Shown: one piece after another, positions 5,095 to 61,070 of the stretch
Position numbering within the stretch: the first letter of the stretch is position 1
How the letters are laid out: every line of letters begins with the position of its first letter
NCBI GenBank assembly: GCA_035084275.1
Contig: JAYJKW010000344.1
Coordinates: 248,001 to 312,000 of the forward strand
Source of the DNA: Hydrolagus colliei
Lineage: Eukaryota
Direction: 5' to 3'
DNA: 64,000 nucleotides
Program-made: the position numbers and the translations under genes
Notes under the pieces: generated by a model
Told to the model about the DNA's origin: nothing
The model's input: the letters and a program-made list of their open reading frames with translations, nothing else
The model's database searches: none

Positions 5095-6545
5095 TAATGG
5101 GGATCAAACGCAGATCTATTGGTTGGAAGGCAAGCCGTCAACCACTGAACTAAGAGACGGCTCAAGGATGTGAAAACGAGTTTCAAAAATTCATCTAACA
5201 AAACGTTTTCACCGTTAATAAAAATTTAGATTAATTTAACACATTTAGGTTTTGGGGGAAGGTCAAGATTTAAAAAAAAGGCTTAACAACAAAAGTGCTG
5301 ACAATACCGAGATGAGGGTTGGATTTAAAAAAGGTGTGAAACATGGTTGACAAAGAGATACGTTTTAAGGCAGAATTGGATAAGGTAAACCAAGGTGTGA
5401 GTCACAATCAACTGTGGGAATCATCTAGATAGAGTGTGTTGCTAATGGTTGAGAGCTGTATGGTGTGTTGGTTTACGTGTGGTGATCGAGGCGGGATGGT
5501 CATGTTTGAGGATAGGCAGTTGGATTTCTGGATGAGGTAGAAGAAGGGTGGAGAGTTCAATCCACAGTGGGATGGGTAGCCAAAGGAGGTCAACTCGCAG
5601 GTTCGATACTGAGCTCAACATGCATTGTCGCCATTTAACATGACACATATAACAACTAATCTTAATTATGTGGCACCCCACACACCGTGTAGCATACCAG
5701 AGGGCTGAACAGTAGTGGTGGATGGAGTCAACGCGTGGCTAATGGGATGCCAACATAGAAACCATTGAATAGGAAGCTCTTCAAACATGACATGAAGTCG
5801 TGGATGGGCACGAAAACGAATAGGGATGGGAGTGAATGTTCTGGACATTCTGGTCGTATGCACTAAAAACGTGGCCACCATTGAAATGGGGGCACAACGA
5901 CAAGCGGAAAGACAGAGCCAACAGAGCGGCGGATGTGGATTGAACCCTGGGCTGTTAGCAAGTCGGATAGCTGGCAAAATGCAAAGGCATGAAGAAATTT
6001 GGAAACAAGTTTGATTACCTCTAAATTGACCCATTCACTTATGGGAAGTAATTGGATCATCGCTGGAACTGGTGTGGTTTAAGCCCAGAAGGGAAACCCA
6101 AGCAATCTGCCATCATATCCTGTTTTCCATTATATAAGTTCATAGTTGATCTTTACCTCGTATAGTGAACCACAATGCCCAGTTTCAATTAATACCCTTC
6201 CCTAACACATCCTTTGCTCGCCTCGTTCCTGAAGATGTGAATGGATTAATCATCGATGGGCTTTCGTGCCAGAGAGATGCAGGTGTGCAGTAACGAAAGA
6301 TGAATACTGCCAGCTAATTTCACACTTTAAATCACCTTAAACTGTCCACTATCTTTGATTCCCCAGCAATTGGAAATAGATTAACTGTATTTGCTCTATC
6401 AAATCACTACATTCTTAAAATCCCAATCAGGTGATTCATCAACATTGTTATCTCAAGTGAATGGAAATTAGATTTATATATGTTATCATAATGAATTATT
6501 TTTTTGCCATGTTATCATTTTGGAGAGTTTGTGAAATTCCCCCAC
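5095..6545. repeat. Right arm of a large diverged inverted repeat
   Basis: Colinear reverse-complement match to 2325..3795 along the whole length; mirrored ORFs 3201..3431(+) and 5442..5681(-). Confidence 0.9.
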
Positions 6546-10744: not shown

Positions 10745-11350
10745 ACGAAAAATACTATTGAAGCTGGAAATCTGAAACTGAAACAGGGAGTGCTGGGAAA
10801 ACTCAGCAGTATCTGTGAGAAACGAAATTGAGTCAGACTTTCGCGTCCACGACCCTTCATCAGAACCGTTATGATCTGAAGTGGCTGAATTCGATATTGA
10901 GGCCAGAGTGCTGTACGTTCCCGTGCAGATAGATAAGATATCAGCTCCCCTCCCCCTTTCCCGTCTCTCTGTTACAGAAGATTTATATTTTGTCACCATC
11001 AGAGTCATCGCTCCAGTCACTGTTTGTCGCCCGAGTATGTTGCCTGCCCTTCTCCAGTAACACCTGCCCTCCACAGTCATGTTTCAGCCCACCACTTTTT
11101 GCTTCACACGGTTGTCGCCTCTCCAGCACATACATCAACACAGTTTCTCCTTTATCTACGTTTTCTGTCCTTCCATTATCCTTTTTCTTCCTTGTCCTGC
11201 CTCGCTCTCTCTAAATTGCCCATTACTCTCCCTTCAAATATGGCTCAGTTCTGATGAAGGGTCGTCCAACAAAAATGTTGACTCGGTTTCCTTTCTCTAT
11301 AGATGCTGCCTGAACTGCCGAGATTTCCCAACTCGCTCTGTTTTTTATTT
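10745..11350. mobile_element. Penelope-like element termini inside the GPCR intron (one minus, one plus)
   Basis: tctgatgaagggtcgtccaacaaaaatgttgactc...tagatgctgcctgaactgccgag at 11248-11330 and its reverse-type counterpart at 10780-10870. Confidence 0.6.
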
Positions 11351-12850: not shown

Positions 12851-13034
12851 TTGTGACAGATCAGCGTGTTTCATGTCGTGATATGGAAGAGCTCGAAACT
12901 TCTGAATCAGAAGCCAGGGCTCTTTCGCTCTGCCTTGCTCTCCTTTTCAAATTTTCAATCTTATTTGAACCAAATGCCATCAACTCACACAGCTCCGACT
13001 TAAATATGTTTGTTTGTTTTTCATTGTCTTACAG

Positions 13035-13931
13035 CGAACCTGTTGACCATTGTGGTCCTGTCCCGCGGGAAGTGTGGTCTCTCCAAATGTACCAGCCGCT
13101 ACCTGGTGGCCATGGCGGTGGGTGATCTACTGGTCGCCATCAACGATGTGCTATTGAACAAAATCCGTCCTCTTTATTTCCCTGACGGATTTCTGGATAT
13201 CACTCCCGTGTGTTCTCTCAGAATTACACTGCTTTCAGCTGCGGGACATCTTTCAGTCTGGTTCACAGTGGCTTTCACCTTTGACCGCATGGTCGCTGTC
13301 TGTTGGCTGAAACTGAAAGCTAAATATTGCACCGAGAGAACAGCAGCCATGGTTATAGCAGTGATCTCTGCTCTGAGCTGTTCGATCAGCGTTCCCTGGT
13401 ACTTTAGTTATGAACCCTTGGGGATACTGGGCAATGTGCCTTGGTATTGCATTAAGAAAGCAGCTTTCTACACCTCTCTAATGGATTGTGTTTCACTGGT
13501 TAGACACAATTATAACCCCATTCGCTCCATTCTTTCTGATTTTGCTGTTGAACGCGGTGACCGTCAGACACATATTAGCGGCCAATAGAATCCGCAGAAA
13601 TCTCCTTCACCAGAATAGTGAAAGCGGTAATGATGCGGAGATGGTGAATCGAAGGAAATCCATTATTTTGCTCTTCACCATATCGGGAAGCTTCATACTG
13701 TTGTGGTTGATGTACGTTTTCGAATTCATACTTTCTCGAACCTTGGACAGTTTTGCCTGGAATCATTACACAGACCCAGTGTATGTTTACACGCATGTGT
13801 CGGACATGCTGATGCTTTTGAGTAGCTGCACGAACACCGTCATTTATGCGGTGACACAATCTAAATTCAGAGAAGAAGTGAAAATTCTGGTGATATATCC
13901 ATTTCAACAAATTCTTCAACGTGCTAAATAA
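13035..13931 (+). pseudogene. GPR139-like class A GPCR paralog 1, main exon, frameshifted
   Basis: Acceptor ttgtcttacag at 13034. Motifs NLLTIVVLSRGKCGLSK, LAMAVGDLL-like TM2, AFTFDRMVAVC, SSCTNTVIYAVTQSKFREE. The frame changes at ~13480 (TCT CTA A TGG ATT), so the TM5-TM7 half lies in a second ORF (13488..13931). Confidence 0.85.
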
Positions 13932-16492: not shown

Positions 16493-17488
16493 TCTGTTCC
16501 GTCGATAAGGATATTTTCCGATTAAATATATCGATGGGCTCATATCGAGATATACCGAAATATTGATATTTTCGGGTTTTGCGGCGCGGGCATTCGGAGT
16601 GTGCGGGCGTTCCGTGTGCGCGCGCATTCTGGGTGCGCGCGCATTCGGGGACTATTTCCTCAGGAGGTAAATATCCTTCTCTCTCTGTGTCTCTCACTCT
16701 CTCAACCTCAGTGTTTTTCTATCTGTGTGTCTCTGTGTTGCTCTCCCTGTCTCACATCGCCCCCGTCTCTATCTATGTGTATATTATCACATACACCCCG
16801 TTTCTCCTCCCACCCCGACGTGCCTATCTCGCAACCCCCACCCCCGTCGTCTCTCTCCCCCACCACCCTCCCAGCCATCCCTGTCTCCCTCCCCACCCCC
16901 CGCCGTCTCCCACTCCCACACCCCTTGCCGTCTCTCTCCCCCCCCCCCAGCCGTATCTCTCCCCCCAGCCGTCTCTCCCCCTCCCCCCAGCCGTCTATCT
17001 CTCCCTCTCCCCCCAGCCGTCTTTCTCCCCCTCTCCCCCCCACCCAGCCGTCTCTCTCCCCCTCTCCCCCTCTCACCCACCCCCCCAGCCGCCTCTCCCC
17101 CCCCTTCCCCCCAGCCGTCTCTCTCCCCCTCCCCCCAGCCTTCTCTCCCCCCTCACAGCCACCAGCCGTCTCTCTCCCCCTCCCCCCAGCCTTCTCTCCC
17201 CCCTCACCCCCCCCAAGCCGGCTCTCCCCCCCCCCCCCCACCCCTTGCATACCTGTATATTGTATTCGTGGACTATGAATACAATATGGCGACTTTGCAA
17301 CTCGGTCAGTGCATTGTGTATAGAGTTGTGCATTCTGGGTCTTGTAGTTCAGTGTGCTCGCATACCGGTTTTTTTACCCAACACCTAGAATTTTCGGTAT
17401 ATCGATATTGTTGAAATGTCTATATCGGCATATCGTTCTGAAAAATCATATCGGGTTTAGCGATATATCGATATATCGCCGGACTCTA
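16493..17488. mobile_element. Probable non-autonomous hAT-type DNA transposon with an internal C-rich tandem array
   Basis: Clusters of ATATCG/CGATAT subterminal motifs at both ends. Imperfect TIR (tctgttccgtcgata vs tagagtccggcgata). Flanking 8-mers ccacatag / cctgatag (6/8) as a candidate TSD. Confidence 0.6.
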
Positions 17489-21297: not shown

Positions 21298-22575
21298 ACT
21301 CTTGCCTTACAAATCTGATAGAATTTTTTGATGAGGTATCGGAATGGGTGGATAATGGTAGCGCAGTTGATGTAGTTTACATCGACTTTCAAAAGGCATT
21401 TGACAAAGTGCCACATGAGAGACGTATGATGAAATTAAAGGCCCATGGCGTAAAAGGGACAGTGGCAGCGTGGATCCACAACTGGCTGCGAGACAGAAAG
21501 CAGAGAGTTGTAGTGAGCGGCTGTTTTTCAGATTGGAGGGAAGTGAGCAATGGTGTGCCACAGGGATCAGTTTTGGGACCATTGCTGTTTGTAATCTACA
21601 TCAATGATCTGGACTTGGGTGTACGGAGTACAGTTTCCAAGTTTGCAGATGACACTAAGTTAGGGAGAATAGTAAACAGTGAGGAGGATATTAGCCATCT
21701 GCAGGAGGATATAGACAAATTGGTAAAGTGGGCAGACACATGGCAGATGAAGTTTAATGCAGAGAAGTGTGAGGTGATGCATTTTGGGAGAAGAAATGAA
21801 GGGAGGCAATATAGGCTAGATAGTACAATTTTAAATGGTGAGAAGGAACAGAGAGACCTGAGGATTTGTGTTAGTGACTCGTTGAAGGTAGCAAGACAGG
21901 TAGACAAGGCTGGTAAGAAGGCATATGGGATACTAGGCTTTATAAATAGGGGTATAGAGTACAAAAGTCAGGAAGTGCTGACTAACCTCTATAGGACTTT
22001 GGTGAGGCCTCAGCTGGAATACTGTGTTCAATGCTGGTCACCACACTACAGAAAGGATGCGAAGGCATTGGAAAGGGTACAACGAAGATTTACTAGGATG
22101 GTGCCAGGATTGAGGGACTTCAGCTATGAGGAGAGGCTAGATAGGCTAGGGTTATTCTCTCTGGAGCAGAGAAGATTGAGGGGAGACCTAATAGAGGTTT
22201 ATAATATCATGAGGGGTTTCGACAGGGCAAATAGAGAAAAACTATTTCCACTCGTGGGTGCATCTGTGACTCGTGGTCACAGATTTAAAATAGTTTCAAG
22301 GCGCAGTAGAGGGGAGCTGAGGAGAAATTTTTTCACTCAGCGAGTTGTTCGAATCTGGAATGCAATGCCTGAAAAGGTGGTGGAGGCTGATTCGATAACA
22401 ACTTTTAAAAGGGAATTAGATCTTTATTTAGGGAGAACGGGTCTATTAGGCTATGGGGAGCGGGCAGGGCAGTGGGATTGAATCGCTCTTTTCAAAGAGC
22501 CGGCACAGACTAGATGGGCCGAATGGCCTCCTTTTGTGCCGTAAAATTCTATGATTCTATGATTCTATTCTATGT
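21298..22575 (+). mobile_element. CR1 LINE, 5'-truncated, with an uninterrupted RT C-terminal ORF (21348..22481) and (attctatg)n tail
   Basis: SCLTNLIEFFDEV, VYIDFQKAFDKVPH, GVPQGSVLGPLLF, SKFADDTKL, RRLRGDLIEVY; 3' UTR hairpin and octamer tail. Confidence 0.97.
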
Positions 22576-22889
22576 CATTTTGTTTAAAGTGTTGTCTGAA
22601 GATCACTTGAGTGGTCACCCTTCCCAAATCTAGAGCTGTTTGTTACCCTTGTCTTACATCCCTACCTGGTCAGCCGGCTCCCAGACTTCGGCTGCCATCT
22701 TTAACGTAAAGAATAACATTGCCTTTCGACCCAATCCGCTCGCAACCCACGCCCCCTCCCACCACTTTTGCTGACCTGCACTCCACGCTATGAAACAAGT
22801 GAAAATGTTCACCTTTAATCTGATTGGAACTGTGTAAGCGACAGAGAGAGAGTGCTTGTGAGACTATCTTTAATATGTTTTAATTCCAG

Positions 22890-23174
22890 ATCCGCTCCAC
22901 AAACCCACCATTTCCCTGAAACCACATTTCCCGGTGATTGTGAGCGGTGACAATGCGGTGATCTCGTGTTCTGGGAACTATCCTGGCAGCAACTTCTCTT
23001 TATACAGAGACGGCGAGTTTATCACATCACAAACTGCTAGAAATAGTAACAACACAGCCACATTCATCCCATTGGAGATCAGTGCAGGAAATTACACATG
23101 TAAATATACCACACAAAAAGGCAGCCGAGATTTCACATCTCCAGACAGCGAACGACTGGGAATCACTGTCTTGG
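22890..23174 (+). CDS. LRC-type (LILR/FCAR/GP6/OSCAR-like) C2 Ig domain exon D1
   Basis: ttccag acceptor, gtaag donor, 285 nt, phase 1-1: DPLHKPTISLKPHFPVIVSGDNAVISCSGNYPGSNFSLYRDGE...AGNYTCKY...SPDSERLGITVL. It has KP-x-I-S-L, two Cys, F-x-L-x-R-D-G in place of the canonical Trp, and a C-terminal S-xx-S-xx-L-x-I-x-V. Confidence 0.9.
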
Positions 23175-23379
23175 GTAAGAGTTCAGTAAAATCACACACA
23201 ATAACCTACTTTGTTTTTAAAATTTCCAGCAGCTCTTTCTGTCACCAATCTTTACACCATCGATCAACTTTCCATGTTGTCTCCTCGAGTTGTTTGTAGC
23301 CGGGTAAAAACTCAATAAAACAGTTTCCAAACCCCCAACTACCGAGTGACAGCCAAGCAGCTCAATGCCTGTGTCCCCT

Positions 23380-24330
23380 GTGCGTTGCTCCCTGGCACAT
23401 TATCACCTCCCCTGGTCATCTCTCCACCCTCTCCATCCAAATTCCCCCTTATCCCCATCTTTCACCTTCGTCCAAACCCCCTCTGTCCATCACATCCCCT
23501 CCTCCTCCCTACTTCCCCTCTCTACCCCAGTTCCCATCCCCCAATCTCCCAAGCGATCGTCACACAACAGATTCTGCGACCTTCGCTGCGTAGTGGCCCA
23601 GCGAATTTTCTGCCCTTCTCCGCCTTCTCGCTCTCCCCGCCCTCTCGCATCCGGAATCCCCTACATTACCACCTCTACTACTCTCTTTCTCACTGCTTCA
23701 ACCCCACCACCTCTCCTCTCCCCATCTATTCCCTAGCTACTTGGTTAATCTCACATCTCTCCTCCCTCCACGCATAGCACTCTCTCTATCTACTTGTCAC
23801 CCCAATCTACTCCAATCTCCACATGCTAAGACACCTCTCTGCCACCTCTTACCCATTCTCCCACACGTTCCCAACTTTTCATTCCTCTCACGTATCCGCT
23901 GTAACCAATCGCTGCCACAAATCGCTGCCATCGGCTTTCCCGCTCGGGCTATCTCCCAGGGGATAGAGCTCGGCTGGGGGAGGGGCTGATCTGGGAGAAT
24001 GGCTGAGCAGGAGGTGTGGATGACATGGGGGAGGGGGCTGAGCTGCAGCTTTGCGGCTGAGCTGGGGAGGGATTGAGCTCTGGTTGGGGTCAGTGGATGA
24101 TTGAGATGGGTCGAGTTCGTATTGAGGGCTGTGCTGGGGTTCAGGTGTCTTCTGGGATTTGGCGCTGAGTGGGTGTTGGGGGCTCGTCTGGTTGTGAGAA
24201 CTCAGCTGTTGATGGGGCCTGAGATGGGAATGCGGCTGAGCTGGCGGTGGGGATAAGATAGTTGCTAATCTGAATGTGGGACTGCAATGGGGGTGGGGCT
24301 GAGACTGAGTTTTAGTCAATGAGTCGCACC
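23380..24330. mobile_element. Degraded L2-like endonuclease-region fragments in both orientations
   Basis: PHVPNFSFLSRIRCNQS-like EN segment on plus (23860-23930); C-rich/G-rich strand switch at ~23960. Confidence 0.4.
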
Positions 24331-24750
24331 ATCTCAATCGACTTTGTGTGCATTTGTGGCTCCTGAATTATTGGATTCATTCCCCGATCGCGATCGTATC
24401 CTGTTGTTTGATGATGTGTCTGCAGAGCACAAGAGAAGGTCAGACTTCATTCGTGTCACCCTGCCCAAATCTGGAGCTGAGTGTTACCTTAGTCTCACTG
24501 CCCTATCTGGCCAACCCGTCACAACCATCGTCTTCCATCCTTTAGTTTAACGAAAAACTTGCTTTTGTCTGCCACTCACCCCCTCCCAACCCCCCCACCC
24601 CACTTCCCACCCCCTCACCACACTTAAATTGGCTTGGTCTGTACTCCACGCTATGAGACAACTAAATGGTCACTTTTATTCTGAACCGAACCGAGTACTT
24701 TTCACTTTGCGCGTTTTTATGACATAATCTTCATCGCTTTTTCATTCCAG

Positions 24751-25034
24751 ATCCACTCCAGAAACCCAACATTTCCCTGATCAGCGATTCGCGAGTATCT
24801 GTGAGCGGTGATATCACTGAGATCTCCTGTACTGGGGAGTATCCGGGCAGCAATTTCTCTTTGCACAGGACGACAGGTTTATCACATCACAACAAACTCC
24901 ACAGAATAACCACACGGCCACATTCATTCCATCGGAGATCAGTGCAGGAACTTACTGGTGTAGATACAGCGCACAAATAGAGGGCAGAGAGTTCACATCA
25001 CCAGACAGTGATCGAGTGGAAATCTCTTTACCGC
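24751..25034 (+). pseudogene. LRC-type C2 Ig domain exon D2, 1-nt deletion frameshift
   Basis: Paralog of D1 with intact ag/gt sites but 284 nt long. cacagg-acgacaggtttatc vs tacagagacggcgagtttatc marks the deletion (~24869). The corrected reading is DPLQKPNISLISDSRVSVSGDITEISCTGEYPGSNFSLHR...AGTYWCRY...SPDSDRVEISLP. Confidence 0.88.
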
Positions 25035-26039
25035 GTAAGAGCTCAGTAACTTCCCACACAACAACATAATTGACTTTGTACCATATACAGCTGCTCCTCT
25101 TGTAACCACCCTTTACACCACGAGATTATATTTCCGCGTTGTCTCCTGATGTCACCTGGAGTGTTTTCCCCAGTCGTACAATTATCCATGCGATAAAGCA
25201 GTTTCCAGACCCCACCCACCAAGTGATACCGACGCTGCAGAGATACTCCTGTGTGCAGTGCTCCCTTTTCCCCCCTCTTCACATCTCTCAGCAGGTAGAC
25301 TTTTTTTTGCCAAATTGAATGCAATGGCCAGAATAAGGGATGAGTAAGGGGCCACGAGGTTAATTCCTGGGATGAGGGGACAGACGTATGAGATCAGAAG
25401 ATTATCCATGATCTTATCGAATAGCGGGGCAGGCTGGATGTCCTACTCCTGCTACTAATTCTTATGTTCTTATGTTCTAATAACATGGATCTGACATTGC
25501 CTGAAGACATAAGGGAGAACGTGGCGATGAACAGTTGCACTTCAGGCTGGAGCACAGTATACAGTGCTATTCCCATTGTTCAGGATTAGTTAAACTGCTG
25601 TTTGTAATCTAGATTAATGACCTGCTCTTTGATATAGAGAGTGACGTTTAGAAATGCAAAGATGACGAAAAAAACTGGAAATGCAGTAAATTTGAGGTGG
25701 ATGGCAACAGATTTCAGGGGTGTGTGGACAGACTGATGGAATAGGCAAACGCACAGAAGAAGCAACTTAATGCAGATCAGTGTGAAGTGATGTATTCTCA
25801 GAGGAGGAAAGGGGAGAGACAATACACTGTATAGTATAGGATAACATTTTAAAGGTGAGGAGTAGGCGCAGAGACAAATGGGGTTTCCATTAAAAAAACT
25901 GAAAGCTTCCTGCCAACGTGACCCGAATCTCTTGAAATCCTCAGTCTATTCCACAACAGCAGCAACAACTTGCACTTATATGGTACCACGCAGAGTTGCA
26001 TCTTAGAGCGCTTCTCCTTCTCATATCTTCATCCATGTT

Positions 26040-26640
26040 TAAACTCCCATGGCTGCTGTTGCCTCCCCATCTAATTTGCTTCACATTGCACAGGATCAGT
26101 GCGGTTATGCCAGATGCCGTTTACCTTGGAATTATTCAAATGCAATTTATTGTTTCCATCCATTTCAATTCACGCTCACATTCAAAGACTGATCTCTCCA
26201 TCCGTGGTCTCCTGCGCTGGTCCAGCGACCCACAGCGGATGCTTGAGGAACAGCAACTCATCTATCTACTGGGGACCCTACAGCCCTCTGGCGTCAACAT
26301 TAGATTCATCCATTTCAGACCATAAGAGCTCCCCCTCCTCCATGATAATCATCACTTCACCTCTTCTTCCCAGTTTTGATTCGACCCATCCCTTTTTGTT
26401 CCCCACCGCTCCCATCTCTTTAACCCAACAATTAATACTTTTCTTCCATTGTCTTCTTTGTATACTTTGTCGTCATTGCCCTAACCCCCCCTGGTTAACT
26501 TGTCATTAAAAACCTCTCCGTGCCAACAAGCCGCACTTCTAACAAAGGGCTGTGGACCCGAAACGCTGTCTCAATTTTCTCTCTGCATGGATGCTGCCTG
26601 ACTCGCTGAATTTTCCCTGCAACTTCAGTTTTTGTTTGCT
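26040..26640 (+). mobile_element. Penelope-like element, GIY-YIG C-terminus and 3' terminus
   Basis: HFNSRSHSKTDLSIRGLL...RMLEEQQLIYLLGTLQPSGVNIRF; then cccgaaacgctgtc...gatgctgcctgactcgctgaatttt. Confidence 0.8.
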
Positions 26641-26729
26641 ATCGCAACATACACGTGTTTTCCATTCTTTTGGACACGCTGCTGACAGATGTAACCTTTG
26701 TTAATGGAATAATCATGTCTATCTCCCAG

Positions 26730-26878
26730 GTTCCTGGAATATGATGAAAATTGTAAACAGTGTGAGGATCAGTCTGGCGATCGGAGTGTTGCTGGTGACT
26801 ATTCTCCTGGTCGTGGTGGAATGCCGACCAGCAAAACCAGACACCAACCAGGAAAGGGTTATCCAGAATACCTGCTGA
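26730..26878 (+). CDS. TM/short cytoplasmic exon of the LRC-type receptor, with Arg at the TM N-terminus (activating type)
   Basis: atctcccag acceptor, phase 1: (G/R)SWNMMKIVNSVRISLAIGVLLVTILLVVVECRPAKPDTNQERVIQNTC*. The N-x-x-R pattern before a hydrophobic stretch resembles LILRA/FCAR NLIR; no ITIM in the tail. Confidence 0.75.
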
Positions 26879-27339: not shown

Positions 27340-27625
27340 GAGCAATTGCGCTAAGAAATCTATGAACTTTTGTGCTGAAAACCTTTGAGACAGTTTCCTT
27401 ATTCCACGTGGCTTATTATACTCCGTCCCAATAAAACCACGACAATAAAATTGCTCATTTTAATCCACGACTGTTTCTGGGGGACGCTGCTGTGCGTAAA
27501 TGGCTGGCGGAATTCACCCACAAAACACACAGTCAATTCATTTTACAACATACTCTGTGAAGCGCCATGAGACGTCGATTAGATGTGAAAAGCCCTAAAT
27601 CGAATGCAAGGATTATTATTATTAC
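27340..27625 (+). mobile_element. tRNA-derived SINE
   Basis: Body ccacgactgtttctgggggacgctgctgtgcg; tail catgagacgtcgattagatgtgaaaagccc...gcaaggattattatt. Confidence 0.75.
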
Positions 27626-29899: not shown

Positions 29900-31800
29900 A
29901 ATCATAGAATTGTATGGCACAACAGGAGGCCATTAGGACCATCTATCATGCGTCGGCTCTTTGAAAAGACCAACTGATACCCAGTTCCTCACTCTCTCCC
30001 CATAACCTTACAGACTCGTTCTTCCTAAATAAATATTGGATTATCTTTTAAAAGCTGTTATCGAATCGGCCTCGACCACCTTTTCAGGGAATGCATTCCA
30101 GATTCGAACAACCGGCTGATTGAATACATTTCTCCTCAGCTCCCCTCTTCCTCGTTTTGAAACTATATTAAATCTGTAACAACGAAACAGAGATTCGCGC
30201 ACCAGTGGCAACAGTTTTTCCTTATTCACCCTGGCGAATCCTATGATGATTTTTTAAACCTCTATCAGGTTTTATAAACCTCTATTAGGTCTCTGTTGTA
30301 GAGAAAATCTATCTAGCCTATCTAGTCTTTCCTCATAACTGAAGTCGCCCGATACAGATACCATCCTAGTAAACCTTCTTTGCACCCTTTCCAATTCCTT
30401 AATATACTTTTTATAGTGTGGTGACCAGAATTTATCACAGTGCTACAGCTGAAAACTAACCAAAGTTTTATAGAGGTTAGTCAGCACTTCATGAATTTTG
30501 TACGTTATAGCCCCTGGGGGACACAGCGTTATCCCTCGCGTTCGGTATTGAGACCACTGATCTTCCTGATATATATTGATGATCTGGACTTGGGCATAGA
30601 GAGAATTATTTCCAAGTTTGCAGGTGATACAAAGTTAGATAGGGTAGTAAATAGAGAGGAGGACGGAAACCAACTGTAAGCAGACATTCACAGAATGGTG
30701 GAATGGGCCGACGTGTGGCAGATGGATATGAATTTGGATAAGTGTGAGGTAATACACTTAGGTTGGAAAAATTATAGGAGCCAATATAAACTTTGCAGCT
30801 CAATCTTAAGGAGGGGTGAACGTAGAGCGAGATCTGGGTGTTAAAGTAAATGAATCATTTAAGGTAGCAGGGCAGGTAGATCAGGCAGTAAAAAAGGCAT
30901 TTGGTGTGCTGAGCTTGATTAGTAGGGGCATATAGTATAAGAGTAGGAGGTTATGGTTAATCTATACAAAACATTGGTTGAGCCTCAGCTGGAGTACTGC
31001 GTCCAGCTCTGCGCACCTTACTACAGGAATGACATTAAGGCACTGTGCCATATCATTCTATGGCTCTATGTTTCAATGATTTATAAAGCCTAGTATCCCA
31101 TATGCCTTCTTAATGGCTTTGACTACCTGTCCTGTCAAGCAACTAAGAAGGCATGCGGCATGTTATTGTTCATCTCTAAAGCTATAGAGTACAAGAGCAT
31201 GGAAGTCTTGCTGCAACTATATAGGGTCCTGGTTAGACCGCATCTTGAGTATTGTGAGCAGTTTGGGTCTCCTTACTTAATAAAGGACATACCTGCCTTA
31301 GAGGGTGTGCAGCGTAGTTTCACTAGGTTAGTTACTGGGATGTGGGGACTGACCTATGAGGATAGGTTAAATAGACTAGTGTTATGTTCTCTGGAGTACA
31401 GAATAATTCGGGGAGATCTGATTGAAACATATAAGATTCTTAAAGGGGTGGATCAATTGGACAGTGAGGGACTGTTTCCCTTGTAGGAGAATCTGTAATC
31501 AGGAGACATAGTCGTAAAATTAAGGGGCAGCCTTTTAGAACAGAGTTGAGGAAAAATTTCTTCACTCAAAGGTTAGTGAATTTATGGAGTTCACTACTCC
31601 AGAATGCTGTAGATGCTCAGTCCTTGAACATATTCAAGAGTGGTACTGATAGATTTTTAACATAGAGATGTATTAGAGGATATGGGAATAGGGCAGGTAA
31701 TTAGAGTTAGACCAGAAGATCAGCCATGATCTTTTCAAATGGCGAGGCAGGCTCGATGGGCCGAATGGCCTACTCCTGCTCCTAATTATTTTGTTCTTAT
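29900..31800. mobile_element. Compound CR1 cluster (minus 3' end 29900-30490, plus RT 30500-31030, plus 3' portion of a second subfamily 31140-31800)
   Basis: SKFAGDTKL; KAIEYKSMEVLLQLYRVLVRPHLEYC; CR1 tails at both outer ends. Confidence 0.9.
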
Positions 31801-41740: not shown

Positions 41741-42448
41741 TACTTTGAGGCACAGGCTAGAAGACGATCAATCGCGTTATTAAATTCTAACTCTAAGTAT
41801 TAGCATTATTTTGTATGAAAGCACTTCACATCATATACTGCTAAGTGAATTATCTGTATATTTTGGGGCTGTGTATTAAATCCCTCAATATCTTTCACAG
41901 CCTTCACTCTGTTAGCCGCCGGCCTGAAGAGCACAATGTCAATTCTTGTTGTTGTGATAGAGTGGACCACTCGCCATTGATTGGAAGTTACGACATTACC
42001 CTTATTGTGTTGTACAAACCCAGGATTATTTTGATGCCTGAGCTGTGCGACACGCAGATAATCATACCTGAAATGTGTTAATATTTCAGGACAGAGACGA
42101 TGATATGCTGTGTTAAGCCATCACATGTAATAGATAAAGGTCATCTCGGAGAAACATAGAATGTTTCCTCACAGAAAGCAGTCAGACTTATTATATCTGT
42201 GCTTGGCAATTGGTATTCATGAAAATGATTCAAACGATTTGATGCGAACATAAGTCTGTTATGTTTTAGGTTCACACAAGAGTCCAAGATCACATGGTGG
42301 ATCAGTTGTGGGATTGACAGGTATCACCCACTAACTCGGGAGCGTTTACTCCTCCGCTCTGATGTTGTTGCTATCAGTGCTCTTTAATAAGCGATGAGTG
42401 ATATTGCTGCCACAATTTGTCACAATTTTTTCTCTCCCTTTTTTTTAG

Positions 42449-43329
42449 TGAATGTTCTGGCAATCGTAATCCTGTCTAGGGGAAGGTGCGGCCTCTCGAA
42501 AGTCGTCACTTTCTATATGGAGGCGATGGCCGTGTCAGATCTAATGGTTATTATCAACGATGTGCTATTGAATCGCATCAACAACATGCATTTCCCCTTC
42601 AGCTTCTTGGCCTACACCCATGTATGCAGATTGAGAATCGTTCTGGTGGTCTCTGCCACTCTATGTTCCATTTGGCTAACAGTCGCTTTCACCTTTGATC
42701 GCTATGTCGCGATTTGTTGTCAGAAAATAAAGCAAAGATATTGCTCTGTAAAAACGGCCAGTTTGGTTATTACAACAATGTGTGTGCTCAGCTGTATGCA
42801 ATGCATTCCAATTTATTTTATTTATGTTCCGCTTGTCGTAGATACTATTCCAAAATATTGCGTTGAAAAACCCAGTTTTCACACTTCACTGTACTGGAAA
42901 TATTTTGAACGGTTGATCCGTGCGTTCAATCCTGTAATAGTATCCGTTCTCATTACCGTCGTCAACGCCCTGACTGTCAGACACATTTTAGTGGCCAACA
43001 GAGCCCGCAGGAGAATCCGCGGTGACAGCAGTGGAAATAACCAGAATGATCCCGAGATGGAGAAACGGAGAAAATCCATCATTTTGCTCTTCGCTATATC
43101 CGGCAGTTTTGTACTTTTGTGGATGACAAATGTTGTACATTCTTTAAAATGGTCAGTTGCAGACTACCAAAATATACCGACGGACATCAGCACTCCGTAT
43201 ATCGTCCAACAAACTGGATTTATGCTTCAGCTACTGAGCTCCTGTACAAACTCTTGTATCTACGTGTTGACCCAGCGCAAATTTAGAGAAGAGATCAAGA
43301 AGATTGTAAAATGCCCGTTTGCCAATTAA
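42449..43329 (+). CDS. GPR139-like class A GPCR paralog 2, main exon (open frame; first coding exon not identified)
   Basis: Polypyrimidine tract plus AG at 42447-48, phase 1: (V)NVLAIVILSRGRCGLSK...AFTFDRYVAICC...RRKSIILLFAISGSF...SSCTNSCIYVLTQRKFREEIKK*; no stops or frameshifts. Confidence 0.88.
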
Positions 43330-49223: not shown

Positions 49224-49497
49224 NNNNNNNNNNNNNNNNNNNNNNNNNNNNNNNNNNNNNNNNNNNNNNNNNNNNNNNNNNNNNNNNNNNNNNNNNNNNN
49301 NNNNNNNNNNNNNNNNNNNNNNNNNNNNNNNNNNNNNNNNNNNNNNNNNNNNNNNNNNNNNNNNNNNNNNNNNNNNNNNNNNNNNNNNNNNNNNNNNNNN
49401 NNNNNNNNNNNNNNNNNNNNNNNNNNNNNNNNNNNNNNNNNNNNNNNNNNNNNNNNNNNNNNNNNNNNNNNNNNNNNNNNNNNNNNNNNNNNNNNNN
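49224..49497. other. Assembly gap (274 N)
   Basis: Run of N. Confidence 1.
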
Positions 49498-56088: not shown

Positions 56089-56480
56089 TTATTGACATGC
56101 ATTCACAGTGTCCATCAGGACAAGGGAAATGTTTACAAAACTTGGTTTACCGCTGGATTTGTTAACGGTTCTGGTCAAGGTCTTCAGTGCGAAGGTTTCA
56201 TGTCCGACAATACAGGAGTAGGAGAAGCCTCTACCCCACTCTCCAGCTGAGATGGTCAACATGCTGTACATGGAGTAGTTGCGATCTGCGCTATCTGCCA
56301 TCAACTCAGTGTTCTTGTAGTTGCTGACATCTATCTCCTTGTCATCAACAGTCCATTGCACAAAGATCTCTTTGGGAGCGAAGTCCTTCACCAGGCAGGT
56401 GAGGGTGACAGACTGCTGAGCAGTCAATTCTGCTGCCGAGGGGAGGAGGATGTACACTGATGGTTGTTTTGTGTGGTCAA
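56089..56480 (-). CDS. IGHM: IgM-type CH4 exon with secretory tailpiece (internal donor for the TM form after 56151)
   Basis: (V)DHTKQPSVYILLPSAAELTAQQSVTLTCLVKDFAPKEIFVQW...YSCIVGHET...VNKSSG|KPSFVNISLVLMDTVNACQ*; tailpiece N-I-S sequon and penultimate Cys. Confidence 0.97.
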
Positions 56481-56915
56481 CTGTGGGACAAACACAATCA
56501 AATCAATACATTAACGTAATCAATCAAATAATACGTTCATGCGCAACATGCAGTTGAACAAATTGAGAATGTCTGTGTTCAGTGGTGTTTTCTGAAATTT
56601 CCTCATATAACTTTATTAGGTCCACCCAGAGAAAACTGGTTTAGGTGTTTCCAACTAAACTCATTGAGAACATTTCTCACATTCTCCAAGAAAAATAATT
56701 TATTTATTTATTGTGGATATTATTCACTGAATAATAAGGTATTAAACTACTTATCAACTTATATAAAGATAGGTTTTCTGGCCTCTTTGATAGGCAACAA
56801 ATCCACAGATAGATGGAAAGACAATACAGTCCAGAGACAGTTACTAATTGTTTTCACGATTATTTCCATTGTCTACATTCTAAAACCACGTATTTCCCCA
56901 AATCTAGCTCCATAC

Positions 56916-57224
56916 CTGTCCTCTGAAATATCTTTTCTCTGACAGGAGTTGGCATATCTTCGTGGCTGGCAACGCAGAAGAACTCCTTCCCACTCTTCCA
57001 GTCTTCTGTAGAAACGTTTAATTCACTCATCACTTCATGACGCTCAGTGACAGATGGTTTCCCATATCCAGATAGTTGTTTCTCTCCTTGTGTCCAAGAC
57101 ACGTTGACATCAAGTGGTGCATTATCCACTACACAGGTCAGTGTTACAGAGGATTCCATCAACACCTGTTTTGGTGAAAGTGGAAGGAAATAGATCTTGA
57201 CATTCCCAGTGGGATCCTCACAGT
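56916..57224 (-). CDS. IGHM: IgM-type CH3 exon
   Basis: ttctag|(D)CEDPTGNVKIYFLPLSPKQVLMESSVTLTCVV...VSW...WKSGKEFFCVASHEDMPTPVREKIFQRT G|gtatgg; 309 nt, phase 1-1. Confidence 0.96.
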
Positions 57225-57948
57225 CTAGAAAAGGAAAAGAAAGCTTATTCACAAATATCAGCCAATAGGCATGTTTCGTATTCGTTCAGGCTGATCAATA
57301 GTGTACACACACATTATCAGCTTCTGGATGAGATAAATACAGACTGTTGTTTACCAACGCAAGGATCGTTTGGTGTTGGAATAATGTACTGGAAAAGACA
57401 TGGTTATGGTTAGTCCTGACCCTATCCCTAGCGAATCTCAGAAGCCCTGCATGTTAATTGGCCGATTGATATCGCATATCCATCGTCTGATAATGAACAA
57501 GTATTAAGCAAATACGTTCGATGAGTAGTACCTCAGCAGTGTGTGTCATCTGCATACCTTCTTGGATTACACAAATAGTCTGTTTGTTTTCAGAGAGTTC
57601 AGTGAAACTGGAGATTGGGGAAATGTGTGGAATGTGAGAATTGCATCGTCGGTCACATGGACCTGTGAGAGGTATGATATGTGCCCTTGAGAAGCAGATC
57701 AGTAAATGACTGACATAGTGTGTCTGCTTGGCCACCCGCTGATACGTGAAGAGGATCAGGGCCTGATTTCCTCATGTTGTGCAGGTCAACAAAACACTGG
57801 ATCAATGCTCACATGTGCAATGTCCTCAGTGAAATAACAAAAGGGGGTGAAATGAAATGAGCTATTTGATCTCATAGGAGTGGATAATGGGAAGCATTAC
57901 CAGAAGCACATTGTTGCCATGATTCTCAACTGGTTCTTTGCTTCATAC

Positions 57949-58278
57949 CTGAGGACTTGGTGATGTTCTTGACAATGTATGTCTGTGTTGGGCTATGGGA
58001 AACCTGGCAAGTGTAAACCGAGCCACTCCTCCACTCTCTGGCGAGGACAGTCAGCCGGCTGCTGGTGGTGAATGTCCCATTGTCTTCTTTAACGGAGGGA
58101 GAGGTCTCAACCCCCGAGGTGATGGGCTCCCAGTCCTTCAACCATTTAACTGTCAGTTCATCTGGACGGAAGCCAGATATCAAACAGACAGCAATGCCTG
58201 GTTTGTGGATTGCAATATCTTCAGGAGATGGCTGAGTGAGGATAACAACTGGGGGCGATGGCTCCTGAATTTCATCAA
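57949..58278 (-). CDS. IGHM: IgM-type CH2 exon (copy b)
   Basis: tttcag|(V)DEIQEPSPPVVILTQPSPEDIAIHKPGIAVCLISGFRPDELTVKWLKD...YTCQVSHSPTQTYIVKNITKSS G|gtatg; 330 nt, phase 1-1. Confidence 0.96.
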
Positions 58279-59281
58279 CTGAAATGCATGAAATAATAGG
58301 TTATGTTTTGTGCAGTTCTTATTAATATTGAAGCAAACGTTGATTTCAGCCCGAGTGTGGACACCTCTCTGTTGGAGCTTTATATATTTGTATCTTCCCT
58401 GTAAAGATAGTCTTATCATTCTCACCTTACAAAATTCTAATCTCCTCAATCTATTCATCTGACTTAGTGAACTAAATGTTAAAGTGGGCCTGGAGTTGAA
58501 AACTCTTCTGCTCTCCTTTACCCGATTCCTACCACTGAACATTCCTTACATCTTGCACTCCAAAGCTATGTAGCTCCCCTTCTCTATGTCCCACCTTCTC
58601 ACTGTCTAGTTTCTGTTGTTCCTGTGTCGTGTCACATTATTCATCTATCTTCCCCAGTCCATCTCAACTTCGTCGAGTACTTTGTATCCCGTTCATATAT
58701 GCCCTTCATCTGCGGATAAAGCAGCATTCGAGAAATTAGTGTAATTTGGGAATTACAGATTCTCTGTGATGGGATTTCATTTAATCCAGTGAAGAAAAGT
58801 GACATACTCACATCTGCAATAGAGAATTCTACAATCCAGACTAATGATAATAATATTCCTTATATAGCTACAGAAAATTTTAATGTTTTTGAGGCGTCTA
58901 AAGGTGCTTACCAGAATAGACCAGGAAACAAAATTCGATGTACATTTTATTCGCAAAATGCGGCAGCCAAGGGCTCACTGCAGTGTCCCATGAATTTGGT
59001 GCATTGAAGTCATTGATTTTTATTTGAATAATAATTAGCTCCCAGAAATGCGATACACCAATGGACTGACCACAGGTTTCATACTTTCTTCCAGGTGTTC
59101 AGATATATGTGTAGTAACTAAACTAGCCCAATCTTTTGTCCTGCCTGGGAATCAAGCCAAAAATTCTAGTTTGAGATGTGAATGCTCTAACCACTGATCT
59201 CCAGGACTCCACATGTAAGCAATACAGGAAACTCAGAGCCACAACATTGCCACATGCATCAGCTGGCGCTGCGCCCCCTAC

Positions 59282-59605
59282 CTGTGGGCATGGTGATGCT
59301 CTTGACAATGGTGGTGTCGGTGGGACTGTGGGACACCTGGCATATGTAAACCCCGCCATTCCTCCATTCTCTGGCGGGGACAGTCAGCCGGCTACTGACG
59401 CTGAATGTCCCATTGTCTTCTTTAACCGAGGGAGAGGTCACCACACCTGAGGGCACGGGCTGCCAGTTCTTGAGCCACTTAACACTCAGTTTATCGGGAT
59501 GGAAATGGAATATTAAGCAAACAGCTGTGGCCGGTCTGACCATTGCCATGTCTTCAGGGGAAGGATGTAGGAGGACAACAACTGGGGGTGACGGTTTTAC
59601 AATAT
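59282..59605 (-). CDS. IGHM: CH2-like exon (copy a) in the position normally held by CH1
   Basis: ttgcag|(D)IVKPSPPVVVLLHPSPEDMAMVRPATAVCLIFHFHPDKLSVKWLKN...YICQVSHSPTDTTIVKSITMPT G|gtagg; 324 nt; 73/104 aa identical to copy b by hand alignment. Confidence 0.95.
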
Positions 59606-61070
59606 CTGCAACAAATTAAATAAAAGTTTATGATTTGTTCCATAGAAGTACATTTTGTTGTGCGATACATAATGATAGTGAAATGCCAGCCATGATGTGG
59701 AAATTCCTCTCTCATCGGCATACCTTTTTCAATCTTCCCTATAAAAGAAAGCCTTTAGAAAGATGAATAATGCGATCTCTTCAATCAATTTACCTGATGT
59801 TTTAAACTAAACTCTATAGAGGGCTTGCATTTGAGAACACTTCTATTCTCCCTGCCCACGTACATCTCATTCAGCATTCCTCAATTATTGATCTTTAAAG
59901 ATAACTCAGTGTCATTCTGTGAGTCCTGCTTCCCCACTGTCTGGTGAGTGTTGTGTCTGTTCCTTTTCAAGCTGCTCGCATATCTATCCCACTCCAACTT
60001 AACAGGTCATGTCCTTCCTACCATTGGTCTATATATGACGATTAGCTCCAGATATGGAGGTATATATGCGTGTGTGTGCATTAGTGCGTGTGTAAGTGCA
60101 TATAAGTACTACTAACTGTAGAGGTTTTCAACCGAGGCCGTGGCTGCTTGCAGTTGAAAATAAAATATCCCATGACGCTAAACTAAAACAGAATGTATTC
60201 TCTCTCGCTCCCTCTCTATCACTCTGTCTCGTCATACTAGTCAACAATCCCCCCCAAATATTATTTCTCAATCACTCTACCTTGTTTTTGTGACAATGGT
60301 CTGTGCAAAAGGCTTTTGCGCTTTGCTTAGAAAATACAGACAATCCACTTTGCATTATGTCCTGCGTTTTACCACCACGCTAGGCATCGTATCTAATGCA
60401 AACATTATAAAATGACGTATGTGCACATGACAGCGTGCATAACTGCACCGAATGACAACAGTTGACTTCATTTATTTGTACTATTCATCATAGTTTGTTT
60501 GGATGCAGCTGTAACTTATTTGTTGTGCGTTGAGGTGGTGTTAAGCGGGAGGTAGGGGTGGGGGGGCAGGAGGTTAATTGCCTCCAAGGTGTTACATTTG
60601 GCATTTTGCATTTAAATGTACTTCAAATTGAAGCTCCCAACAATGTAGTTTTAGCTGTGAAAACCTGTGTGAAAGAAACTGCTGATCAAACAGCAAAGCA
60701 TTATCTGCCTGCCTGTCTATGTACTGCTTGATCTCACACTCAGTTCTCCGAGATGGATTGTAACTTCTTCTCGATCTTGTGTCATATTTCAGATGTCAAT
60801 CAGTGAAAAAAAGGCAGTGATGACTGTCAGTGTCTGTCTGTGACCCTGGAGTCAGTGACGCTGAATCGACAGAGAAGCAGCTCAAAGCCACCAATTTTTG
60901 GACTGTGTTTCTATAGGTACATTGGGATCATAAATCTGACTCTGACCAATAAGATTTCAGAATTCAAAATCACACCGAATTTTTAATTGCCACTAAAATT
61001 CAAATTTAGCTTCAATTTTGAAAACGTCTATTAATTTGCTAAAATAAACTAATGTCAAGGTTCCTCAGAG

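Follow-up and report, generated by a model that had tools for sequence, protein, structure and literature searches.

Three exons in the 64-kb stretch of DNA analyzed here (the window) are best read as the 3′ portion of a single gene in a holocephalan multigene family of LRC-like paired receptors, in a copy that is probably a pseudogene or gene fragment. We favor this reading because the second immunoglobulin (Ig) exon is frameshifted and because the 22.9 kb 5′ of the first yielded neither a leader nor any further coding exon belonging to the family. The three exons, two for Ig domains (D1 and D2) and one for the stalk, transmembrane segment (TM) and cytoplasmic tail, share one strand and are phase-1 compatible (Table 1).

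Table 1 Features of the receptor gene and their positions in the window
Feature	Position	Strand	Description
Ig exon D1	22890-23174	+	285 nt; AG/GT splice sites; phase 1-1; frame open
Ig exon D2	24751-25034	+	284 nt; D1 paralogue; AG/GT splice sites
Stalk, TM and cytoplasmic exon	26730-26878	+	phase 1; AG acceptor; stop TGA at 26876-26878
Intron and exon duplication unit, copy 1	22779-23284	+	copy 2 at 24643-25146
AATAAA hexamers (two)	27430-27449	+	about 550 nt after the stop; pattern match, candidate polyadenylation signals

Two Ig exons, one of them frameshifted

The D1 exon translates to DPLHKPTISLKPHFPVIVSGDNAVISCSGNYPGSNFSLYRDGEFITSQTARNSNNTATFIPLEISAGNYTCKYTTQKGSRDFTSPDSERLGITVLG, in which both Cys are kept (ISCSG, YTCKY) and three N-x-S/T sites occur. 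D1 matched Pfam Ig_2 at 6e-9, its AF2 model reached a pLDDT of 83, and it shares 55-68% identity with 32 holocephalan family domains. Protein matches to this exon in Callorhinchus milii were as strong as 4e-105, and the similarity of D1 is well past chance level. D1 is an intact LRC-like C2 domain.

D2 is 76% identical to the D1 exon at the nucleotide level and has lost one nucleotide between 24868 and 24869, where it reads CAG^GAC compared with CAGAGAC; the extra A is present in all four paralogous exons aligned with D2. No long homopolymer stands at this site. D2 is open over its first 40 codons and again, in another frame, over its last 55, and a straight in-frame reading ends at the TAG at 24978-24980. 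For the protein search and the tree (row win_D2), the two open halves were joined with an X at the frameshift, with no stop read through. The first-pass annotation had described two tandem C2 Ig exons; both are indeed present and LRC-like, but the second is frameshifted at 284 nt.

Six of six invariant family columns are kept in both D1 and D2. We set dN/dS aside as a discriminator of the state of the two exons, as its range (0.4-0.7) was the same for both. Because both halves of D2 are open, the invariant residues are kept, the splice sites are good and dN/dS is equal, we regard the deletion as either recent or an assembly error.

Both copies of the duplication unit match the C. milii locus L001:11198-11701. 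Identity between them is 67% and 74% in the flanks and 76% in the exon, and fainter similarity extends back to ~22600 in copy 1 and ~24440 in copy 2. Within the D1-D2 intron, 24311-24488 matches the L001 intron at 10895-11065.

A paired-receptor family in Callorhinchus milii

All 24 protein matches at 55-61% identity came from C. milii, the only species with relatives above 50% identity even when representative matches were included. These relatives, together with the IgM-type C-region exons in the window, bear out the cartilaginous-fish host named in the first-pass annotation. Both D1 and D2 fall within the C. milii clade of the domain tree (support 99/93, with 98/89 at the inner node). The C. 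milii proteins bear automatic names such as ‘osteoclast-associated immunoglobulin-like receptor isoform X2’, ‘immunoglobulin superfamily member 1-like’, ‘alpha-1B-glycoprotein-like’ and ‘deleted in malignant brain tumors 1 protein-like’. The protein collection searched had no annotated product identical or nearly identical to that of the window gene.

Family members, of which the P0004 gene on MU249930.1 is an example, are built from one-exon, phase-1 C2 Ig domains, sometimes with SRCR domains in front. The domains are of the type DPLQKPxISLKP...NYPGSNFSLYRDGEFI...AGNYxCxY...FTSPESERVGISV, to which those of the window conform. Two types of end follow: an uncharged TM with an ITIM tail (VTYATV, IIYANL or PVYATV in C. 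milii), or an N-x-x-R/H TM (NVAR, NVGR, NIVH or NVLH in C. milii) with the short Tyr-less tail ECRPxKxDxxQERVI. As the same Ig domains occur with either end, the family is one of paired receptors, and the window copy carries the activating-type end. The second leader exon (S2) measured 36 nt in three of three mapped family genes, one at L002 and two at L004. Members with a single Ig domain exist (P0015, P0020), and disabled exons are found elsewhere in the family, such as L003 6934-7227 with its in-frame stop. Matches below 11.2 kb that could be taken for L002 belong to L003, so row L002_up5 of alignment A1 carries no meaning.

The window gene is therefore a new member of a family that is annotated but of which we found no description in the published literature. 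To this extent the first-pass view of a family poorly characterized in chondrichthyans holds, but its genes are already annotated under LRC-type names.

Placement of the Ig domains among LRC and Fc receptors

By sequence, profile and modeled fold, the window Ig domain lies nearer to LRC receptors than to FcR. The best PDB matches of D1 were LILRB1/B2, PIR-B, OSCAR, KIR3DL1 and NKp46, with phmmer values of 8e-12 for LILRB1, 2e-8 for OSCAR and 2e-7 for KIR3DL1 compared with 2e-4 for FcεRIα. The family profile gave 7e-22 for PIR-B and 2e-9 for NCR1 as against 2.6e-8 for FCRL5 and 1.6e-5 for FcεRIα, and hhalign scored 79-111 against LRC domains and 48 against FcR. In the Foldseek search, the top 12 matches were all LRC receptors (NKp46, OSCAR, CHIR-AB1, LILRA2, LILRB1 and PirB, with TMq 0.71-0.76), GPVI ranked 18th, and no FcR appeared in the top 50. 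By these four comparisons the Ig domain is LRC-like, in agreement with the LILR/KIR/GP6-type signatures first noted in it. Sampled non-holocephalan matches that carried a family name were called IGSF1, A1BG-like, LILRA6 or DMBT1, never FcR/FCRL; the remaining sampled matches were unnamed or had generic names.

In the domain tree, FcR domains split off (98/94) on a stem of 0.75, the LRC and fish stems measuring 0.22, tetrapod LRC domains grouped together (91/75), and fish domains formed a separate group (95/81). As this tree comprised only three major groups, left out FCRL and LITR domains and had no root outside them, an LRC and an FcR lineage cannot be told apart by its topology. As the fish clade falls outside the tetrapod LRC group, we assign the window gene no orthology to any named tetrapod LRC gene. 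A homology search and a tree of D1 had been proposed in the first-pass annotation: in the search LRC families rank first, and in the tree D1 sits in a fish clade apart from FcR.

It is very unlikely that the domains belong instead to FcR/FCRL or another IgSF lineage, with an N-x-x-R TM that is shared or convergent. The family profile does reach FCRL5 and FcεRIα, and a tree of this composition leaves room for such an origin; however, every LRC family ranks above FcR in PDB phmmer, profile, Foldseek and hhalign comparisons, the FcR domains stand apart on their long stem, and the S2 exon of the family measures not 21 nt but 36, the length that is the rule in LRC genes.

The transmembrane exon

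The last exon translates to GSWNMMKIVNSVRISLAIGVLLVTILLVVVECRPAKPDTNQERVIQNTC, followed by the stop. N-S-V-R lies near the outer end of the TM, and an acidic E comes directly after the hydrophobic stretch. The first-pass annotation had quoted a TM string with an Arg, which stands six residues into it, and a short tail lacking an ITIM; both descriptions proved exact, the cytoplasmic tail having 19 residues with no Tyr and thus no ITIM. The C. milii model P0004 matched this exon at 2.9e-8 (tblastn), and DNA similarity to L001 covers the exon and continues for ~115 nt beyond the stop.

The N-x-x-R TM motif, the role of which has been described (PMC6557307, PMC4536121), is a hallmark of FcRγ-coupled LRC receptors; the NxxR subtype is defined by the Arg, an Asn at −3, an acidic residue at the C-terminal end of the TM and DYT upstream, and the motif is also found in Xenopus FCRL and SLAM receptors (PMC6557307). 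The window TM has NSVR and the closing Glu and lacks DYT. An HMM built from seven tetrapod NxxR TMs ranked it fourth of 3266 pieces, with 4.8 bits and E 3.7, and uncharged TMs of the family scored higher. Because this score is not above background, we do not treat the exon as a demonstrable homologue of the tetrapod NxxR exon, and the window TM appears to resemble tetrapod NxxR TMs at the motif level only. Among the best 150 matches, an NxxR-type TM with a clean hydrophobic stretch was found in tetrapod proteins only.

Leader search and state of the copy

The first-pass annotation had found no leader exon in the window, and all of our searches agree. Blastn with the C. milii S1 and S2 exons gave no match in the window; nor did a leader emerge from tblastn of 28 family proteins, from a protein HMM built on five S2 peptides and run against the six-frame translation, or from nhmmer with DNA models for the S1 and S2 exons, the last of which also drew a blank at L001 and L003. 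Scanning de novo (ATG, hydrophobic run, phase-1 GT donor) returned no usable leader exon upstream, its candidate at 5445 being poor and lying 5′ of another gene, and an upstream scan for AG-36nt-GT mini-exons gave none with usable splice sites. No further family exon (SRCR, other Ig or ITIM tail) was found in the window, and the 22.9 kb upstream of D1 contain a GPCR gene, which is disrupted, and LINE sequence. As evidence of truncation the missing leader is weak, because P0004, P0007 and P0020, the gene models nearest to it in C. milii, have none either and searches with the SRCR-type leader exons found no match at L001 or L003. A turtle LILRA6 gene model, consulted for the length of its S2 exon, has no leader.

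Translated as it stands, the deletion in D2 would cut the protein short before the TM, and the best possible product would be a one-domain receptor, made only if exon 2 were skipped and an unrecognized leader existed. The gene could instead encode an intact two-domain activating receptor if the missing base reflects an error of assembly or consensus and if its leader is unrecognized or farther off. A single lesion in an exon whose halves are open and whose invariant residues and splice sites are intact is consistent with this, as is the fact that the closest C. milii paralogues are themselves modeled with no leader. Nevertheless, we consider it unlikely, as the deletion site lies outside any long homopolymer, the upstream space is taken by the disrupted GPCR gene and LINE sequence and yielded neither a phase-1 hydrophobic ATG exon nor a usable 36-nt mini-exon, and the protein collection holds no matching product. 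More doubtful still is a functional one-domain receptor in which D2 is a skipped pseudoexon and D1 is spliced straight to the TM exon. Such splicing is compatible with the shared phase 1 of the two exons, the single-Ig members of the family have the corresponding design, and human KIR2DL1-3 skip pseudoexon 3; however, the splice sites of D2 are consensus, so skipping is not expected, and a leader, of which the searches found none in the window, would still be required.

We thus retain a pseudogene or gene fragment as the preferred reading of the copy. The first-pass description of an activating leukocyte receptor consequently applies to the design of the family, with its activating-type end, but not necessarily to the window copy, given the D2 frameshift and the missing leader.

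Genomic surroundings

Across the 64 kb, in which part of the ORFs were compared with protein families, the other coding features recognized were two rhodopsin-type GPCR genes, a LINE RT and IgM-type C exons, the IgM-type C-region cluster lying 29 kb from the receptor gene. One GPCR ORF is intact and the other GPCR gene is disrupted. The LRC is framed by RPS9, TSEN34, MBOAT7, TMC4, LENG1, CNOT3, PRPF31 and TFPT (PMC6557307), and none of these framing genes was recognized within the window.

Adaptor pairing and wider significance

By analogy with tetrapod LRC receptors, the Ig domain or domains of such a receptor would bind ligand, and the TM Arg would pair with an ITAM adaptor dimer, most probably FcRγ, through the TM Asp of the latter; the adaptor would then recruit Syk. 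FcRγ pairing and leukocyte expression of the window gene are both putative. In Scyliorhinus torazame, a protein that carries the FcRγ annotation (P0336) retains the TM Asp (CYVLDAILF) and the ITAM (YTGL...YESL). The FcRγ profile search reached catshark and bichir, with no Callorhinchus entry among the 120 matches listed, and a search with the human sequence, a shallow query, gave tetrapod matches only.

Tentatively, we propose that the holocephalan family, with its paired ITIM and NxxR ends, LRC-type domains and 36-nt S2 exon, is the cartilaginous-fish counterpart of the LRC and signals via FcRγ. If so, the LRC/NxxR-FcRγ module would date to the jawed-vertebrate ancestor. This would contradict a survey that found neither LRC-type C2 receptors nor FcRγ in sharks and in which both LRC homologues and FcRγ first appeared in bony fish (PMC4016189), as well as the view that the NxxR TM can be traced only to amphibians, the situation in fish being called uncertain (PMC6557307).

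How LRC/FcR paired-receptor systems arose is not settled. To this question the window copy and the related C. milii genes add LRC-like domains with N-x-x-R/H TMs or ITIM tails, and an LRC-like leader, in a holocephalan. This receptor design, together with the annotated catshark FcRγ with its TM Asp and ITAM, makes the question of LRC origin testable at the bench. The window locus alone adds little, as it is probably a dead copy of a kind common in fast-turnover receptor families. CHIR-AB1 binds immunoglobulin. Given the distance of 29 kb between the window gene and the IgM-type cluster, some family members might, as a bolder extension of the proposal, bind immunoglobulin as well, as FCAR does.

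Comparison with known receptor systems

The closest system is the C. milii family itself. L001 and the window share the exon order D-D-TM, with 72-80% nucleotide identity in the exons and conserved pieces of intron; the TM/tail exon of the family (N-x-x-R/H ... ECRPxKxDxxQERVI) is homologous to that of the window, and a rhodopsin-type GPCR gene adjoins in both. In contrast, the TM of the window copy carries Arg at the position of a His in P0004 and P0002, its nearest C. milii relatives, and this copy has neither an SRCR nor a divergent N-terminal Ig exon and is frameshifted in D2.

The nearest domain relatives outside holocephalans are ‘IGSF1-like’ multi-Ig and SRCR-Ig proteins of elasmobranchs and teleosts, at 30-43% identity, from Amblyraja, Narcine, Chiloscyllium, Pristiophorus, grouper, seabass and Collichthys. 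They form the one fish clade with the window domain, and a teleost member also pairs SRCR with such Ig domains, like some holocephalan family members. Most of these proteins, however, are much longer, with up to 20 matched Ig stretches.

The tetrapod NxxR receptors (LILRA, OSCAR, FCAR, GP6, NCR1, TARM1, IGSF1 and Xenopus ILR1-4; PMC6557307, PMC4536121) share with the window gene an LRC-like C2 domain, the Asn-x-x-Arg, the acidic residue that closes the TM and a short motif-less tail. Tetrapod LRC receptors and the holocephalan family both include ITIM-bearing inhibitory counterparts, but identity between the window domain and tetrapod LRC domains is only 25-30%. Classical FcR/FCRL share a C2 domain per phase-1 exon, a two-exon leader and FcRγ use. 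The similarity of classical FcR to the window domain is remote and below that of LRC receptors in every comparison, and FcR-like genes follow a 30/21-bp leader rule, with an S2 exon of 21 bp as against 36 nt in the holocephalan family (PMC2413239).

Receptor exons and their surroundings

The observation made in the first-pass annotation is real: exons A, B and C share one orientation on the + strand and have consensus splice sites (see table). Re-reading of exon C returned the identical transmembrane (TM) string, with its Arg near the N-terminal end and a short tyrosine-free tail, and two AATAAA hexamers were matched ~550 nt downstream. The likeness between exons A and B continues into the introns on both sides, indicating that an intron-plus-exon unit was duplicated. 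The intron between them holds a long low-complexity stretch (23300-24300), in which a GA/G-rich block comes after a CT-rich one.

Features of the window and of related Callorhinchus milii loci (L001, L002, L004)
Feature	Position	Strand	Description
Exon A (Ig, D1)	22890-23174	+	285 nt, phase 1-1; intact Ig domain, both cysteines, three N-glycosylation sequons
Exon B (Ig, D2)	24751-25034	+	284 nt; paralogue of exon A, 76% nt identity
Exon C (stalk/TM/tail)	26730-26878	+	starts in phase 1; codes GSWNMMKIVNSVRISLAIGVLLVTILLVVVECRPAKPDTNQERVIQNTC then stop
LINE reverse-transcriptase ORF	21348-22481	+	377 aa, open; Pfam RVT_1, 8e-25; ends ~400 bp upstream of exon A
GPCR paralogue	13010-13931	+	split into two overlapping ORFs, probably disrupted
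Rhodopsin-family GPCR ORF	42394-43329	+	311 aa, intact
IgM-type CH4	56092-56457	minus	with secretory tail (...GKPSFVNISLVLMDTVNACQ)
IgM-type CH3	56863-57252	minus	
Two CH2-like exons	57929-58300 and 59262-59615	minus	very similar
Further GPCR paralogue	L001 19568-20261	-	beside related C. milii receptor gene
SRCR-Ig entries	L002 19441-37100; L004 10001-28834 and 36860-38834		also protein P0058

The exact 311-aa GPCR ORF was not in the protein collections on exact look-up. Because a GPCR paralogue lies beside the receptor gene in L001 as in the window, the two gene families seem linked. On the other strand, IgM-type heavy-chain constant exons (56092-59615) begin ~29 kb downstream from the receptor exons, and a run of 274 N (49224-49497) marks an assembly gap or masked sequence.

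A holocephalan family of paired receptors

A protein search with the window pieces, in which exon B was entered as two open halves joined by X with no stop read through, returned 24 proteins, all from C. milii at 55-61% identity; the window's own product was not among them. Exon A used as query in an exhaustive HMMER search gave 754 proteins, and all sampled matches above 50% identity that carried a species name were from C. milii, the next best (25-43%) being elasmobranch and teleost multi-Ig proteins and tetrapod proteins named IGSF1, A1BG-like or LILRA6. In a maximum-likelihood tree of 73 domains, D1 and D2 nested within the C. milii clade (support 99/93, inner node 98/89), which points to C. 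milii or a near relative among the holocephalans as the source of the window. Locus L001 matches the window in its exon order (D1, D2, TM), with 72-80% nucleotide identity across the three exons and conserved intron stretches. The assignment of the window exons to this family is sound.

The C. milii proteins follow a paired-receptor design, in which one domain type is joined to either of two ends. The inhibitory-type end has an uncharged TM and tails with ITIMs (VTYATV, IIYANL, PVYATV); the other has a TM with NVAR, NVGR, NIVH or NVLH and the tail ECRPxKxDxxQERVI, and exon C is of this second type (N-x-x-R/H TM, short tail). In two activating-type TMs (NVLH and NIVH, in P0002/P0003 and P0004) His replaces the Arg. 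Some members are chimeras of the SRCR-Ig kind: they carry between one and three SRCR domains N-terminal to the LRC-like Ig domains, and have an NxxR-type end in some genes, an ITIM-type end in others. Since SRCR and this type of Ig domain also occur together in a 'DMBT1/Hensin' protein of the teleost Collichthys lucidus, this architecture may be old. The family is already in public annotation under LRC-type names, and our literature search found no paper describing it.

State of the window copy

Both tandem Ig exons reported earlier are present, but exon B carries a 1-nt deletion that had been overlooked. Alignment to exon A and to three undamaged exons of C. milii loci placed one missing A between 24868 and 24869 (CAG^GAC versus CAGAGAC). 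Exon B is open in one frame for its first 40 codons (DPLQKPNISLISDSRVSVSGDITEISCTGEYPGSNFSLHR) and in another for its last 55 (DDRFITSQQ...EISLPR), and uninterrupted translation stops at a TAG (24978-24980), so that an mRNA including exon B would code for a truncated product without a TM.

We consider the window copy to be, most probably, an activating-type member reduced to a pseudogene or 3' fragment. Apart from the deletion, exon B looks sound, retaining six of six family-invariant residues and a dN/dS against paralogues of 0.4-0.7, the same as exon A, which argues that the lesion is either recent or an assembly error. An intact gene with an erroneous assembly is an appreciable, if unlikely, alternative; the deletion site has no long homopolymer, and broken exons are not peculiar to the window copy, since a C. 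milii Ig exon of the same family (L003 6934-7227) carries several substitutions at conserved sites besides an in-frame stop. A one-domain form produced by skipping exon B is improbable.

The 5' end bears on the same question. Where mapped, C. milii genes have a first leader exon (S1) of 25-28 coding nt and a second (S2) of exactly 36 nt, and neither has a counterpart in the window by blastn, protein HMM, nhmmer or de novo scan; tblastn with 28 family proteins over the 64-kb window found exons A, B and C only, which bears out the earlier report of a missing leader. The leader models gave no match in L001 and L003 either, where gene models begin inside an Ig domain, and the absence therefore weighs less than the frameshift in favour of a pseudogene or fragment. 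The 22.9 kb upstream of exon A contain the LINE ORF, low-complexity DNA and the split GPCR gene. Related LINE copies (70-83% nucleotide identity) occur elsewhere in the window (e.g. 30041-31045) and in L001, and a long CT-rich tract coding Pro/Ser/Leu (16579-17414) is open in several frames.

LRC-like or FcR-like domains

D1 had been proposed to be of leukocyte receptor complex (LRC) type, and four independent comparisons of sequence and predicted structure favour LRC-like over FcR-like. With phmmer against PDB, LILRB1/B2, PIR-B, LILRA6, LILRB3, OSCAR, KIR3DL1, LILRA2, NKp46 and GPVI all ranked above FcεRIα. A profile of 33 family domains matched PIR-B (7e-22), LILRB2 (2e-13) and NKp46 (2e-9), compared with FcεRIα at 2e-5 and FCRL5 at 3e-8 without any significant single stretch. 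In hhalign, the family profile reached 79 with six human LRC receptors, 111 with the full set of tetrapod LRC rows and 48 with three human FcRs, the LRC-FcR yardstick being 69-84; the human reference ectodomains agree with PDB chains over their full length, at about 2.2-2.3 bits per residue. The best twelve Foldseek hits of the AlphaFold model of D1 (pLDDT 83) were all to NKp46, OSCAR, CHIR-AB1, LILRA2, LILRB1 and PirB, with GPVI at rank 18 and no FcR in the top 50.

In the 73-domain tree, which covered FcR, LRC and fish domains but not FCRL and LITR, FcR domains separated at 98/94 with a stem of 0.75, and the LRC and fish stems each measured 0.22; as the tree has three groups and lacks an outside root, topology alone is indecisive on LRC versus FcR. 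A 36-bp S2 is typical of LRC genes (KIR, LILR, FCAR), and S2 measured 36 nt in each of the three family genes in which it was mapped, so gene structure agrees with the LRC reading. FcR-like genes follow a 30/21-bp leader rule (PMC2413239).

The TM motif and FcRγ

According to PMC6557307 and PMC4536121, no LRC element is better conserved than the NxxR (Asn-x-x-Arg) TM, through which FcRγ associates and which has been followed back to amphibians and birds; the two papers also record the motif in FCRL and SLAM receptors of Xenopus. By extension from tetrapod LRC receptors, an FcRγ dimer would be the partner, its Asp pairing with the TM Arg, and would signal through ITAM and Syk, and ITIM-bearing paralogues would counterbalance this signalling. 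A profile search recovered proteins annotated as FcRγ in the catshark Scyliorhinus torazame (P0336), with the TM Asp (CYVLDAILF) and ITAM intact, and in the bichir Erpetoichthys (P0337), with the conserved TM (C-Y-V-L-D-A-I-L-F) and ITAM; none of the matches listed was holocephalan. A 2014 survey reported no FcRγ in sharks (PMC4016189), a negative that the annotated catshark protein contradicts. Together, the family and this protein are at odds with published datings of the origin of the LRC system.

An HMM built from NxxR TMs of seven tetrapod proteins scored the window TM at 4.8 bits (E 3.7, rank 4 of 3266 six-frame pieces), and uncharged family TMs scored higher, at 7-9 bits. This control weakens the comparison and confines the resemblance to the level of the motif. 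The N-S-V-R at the outer end of the window TM, the closing Glu and the spacing between them match turtle, tortoise and primate NxxR TMs; the upstream DYT motif is absent.
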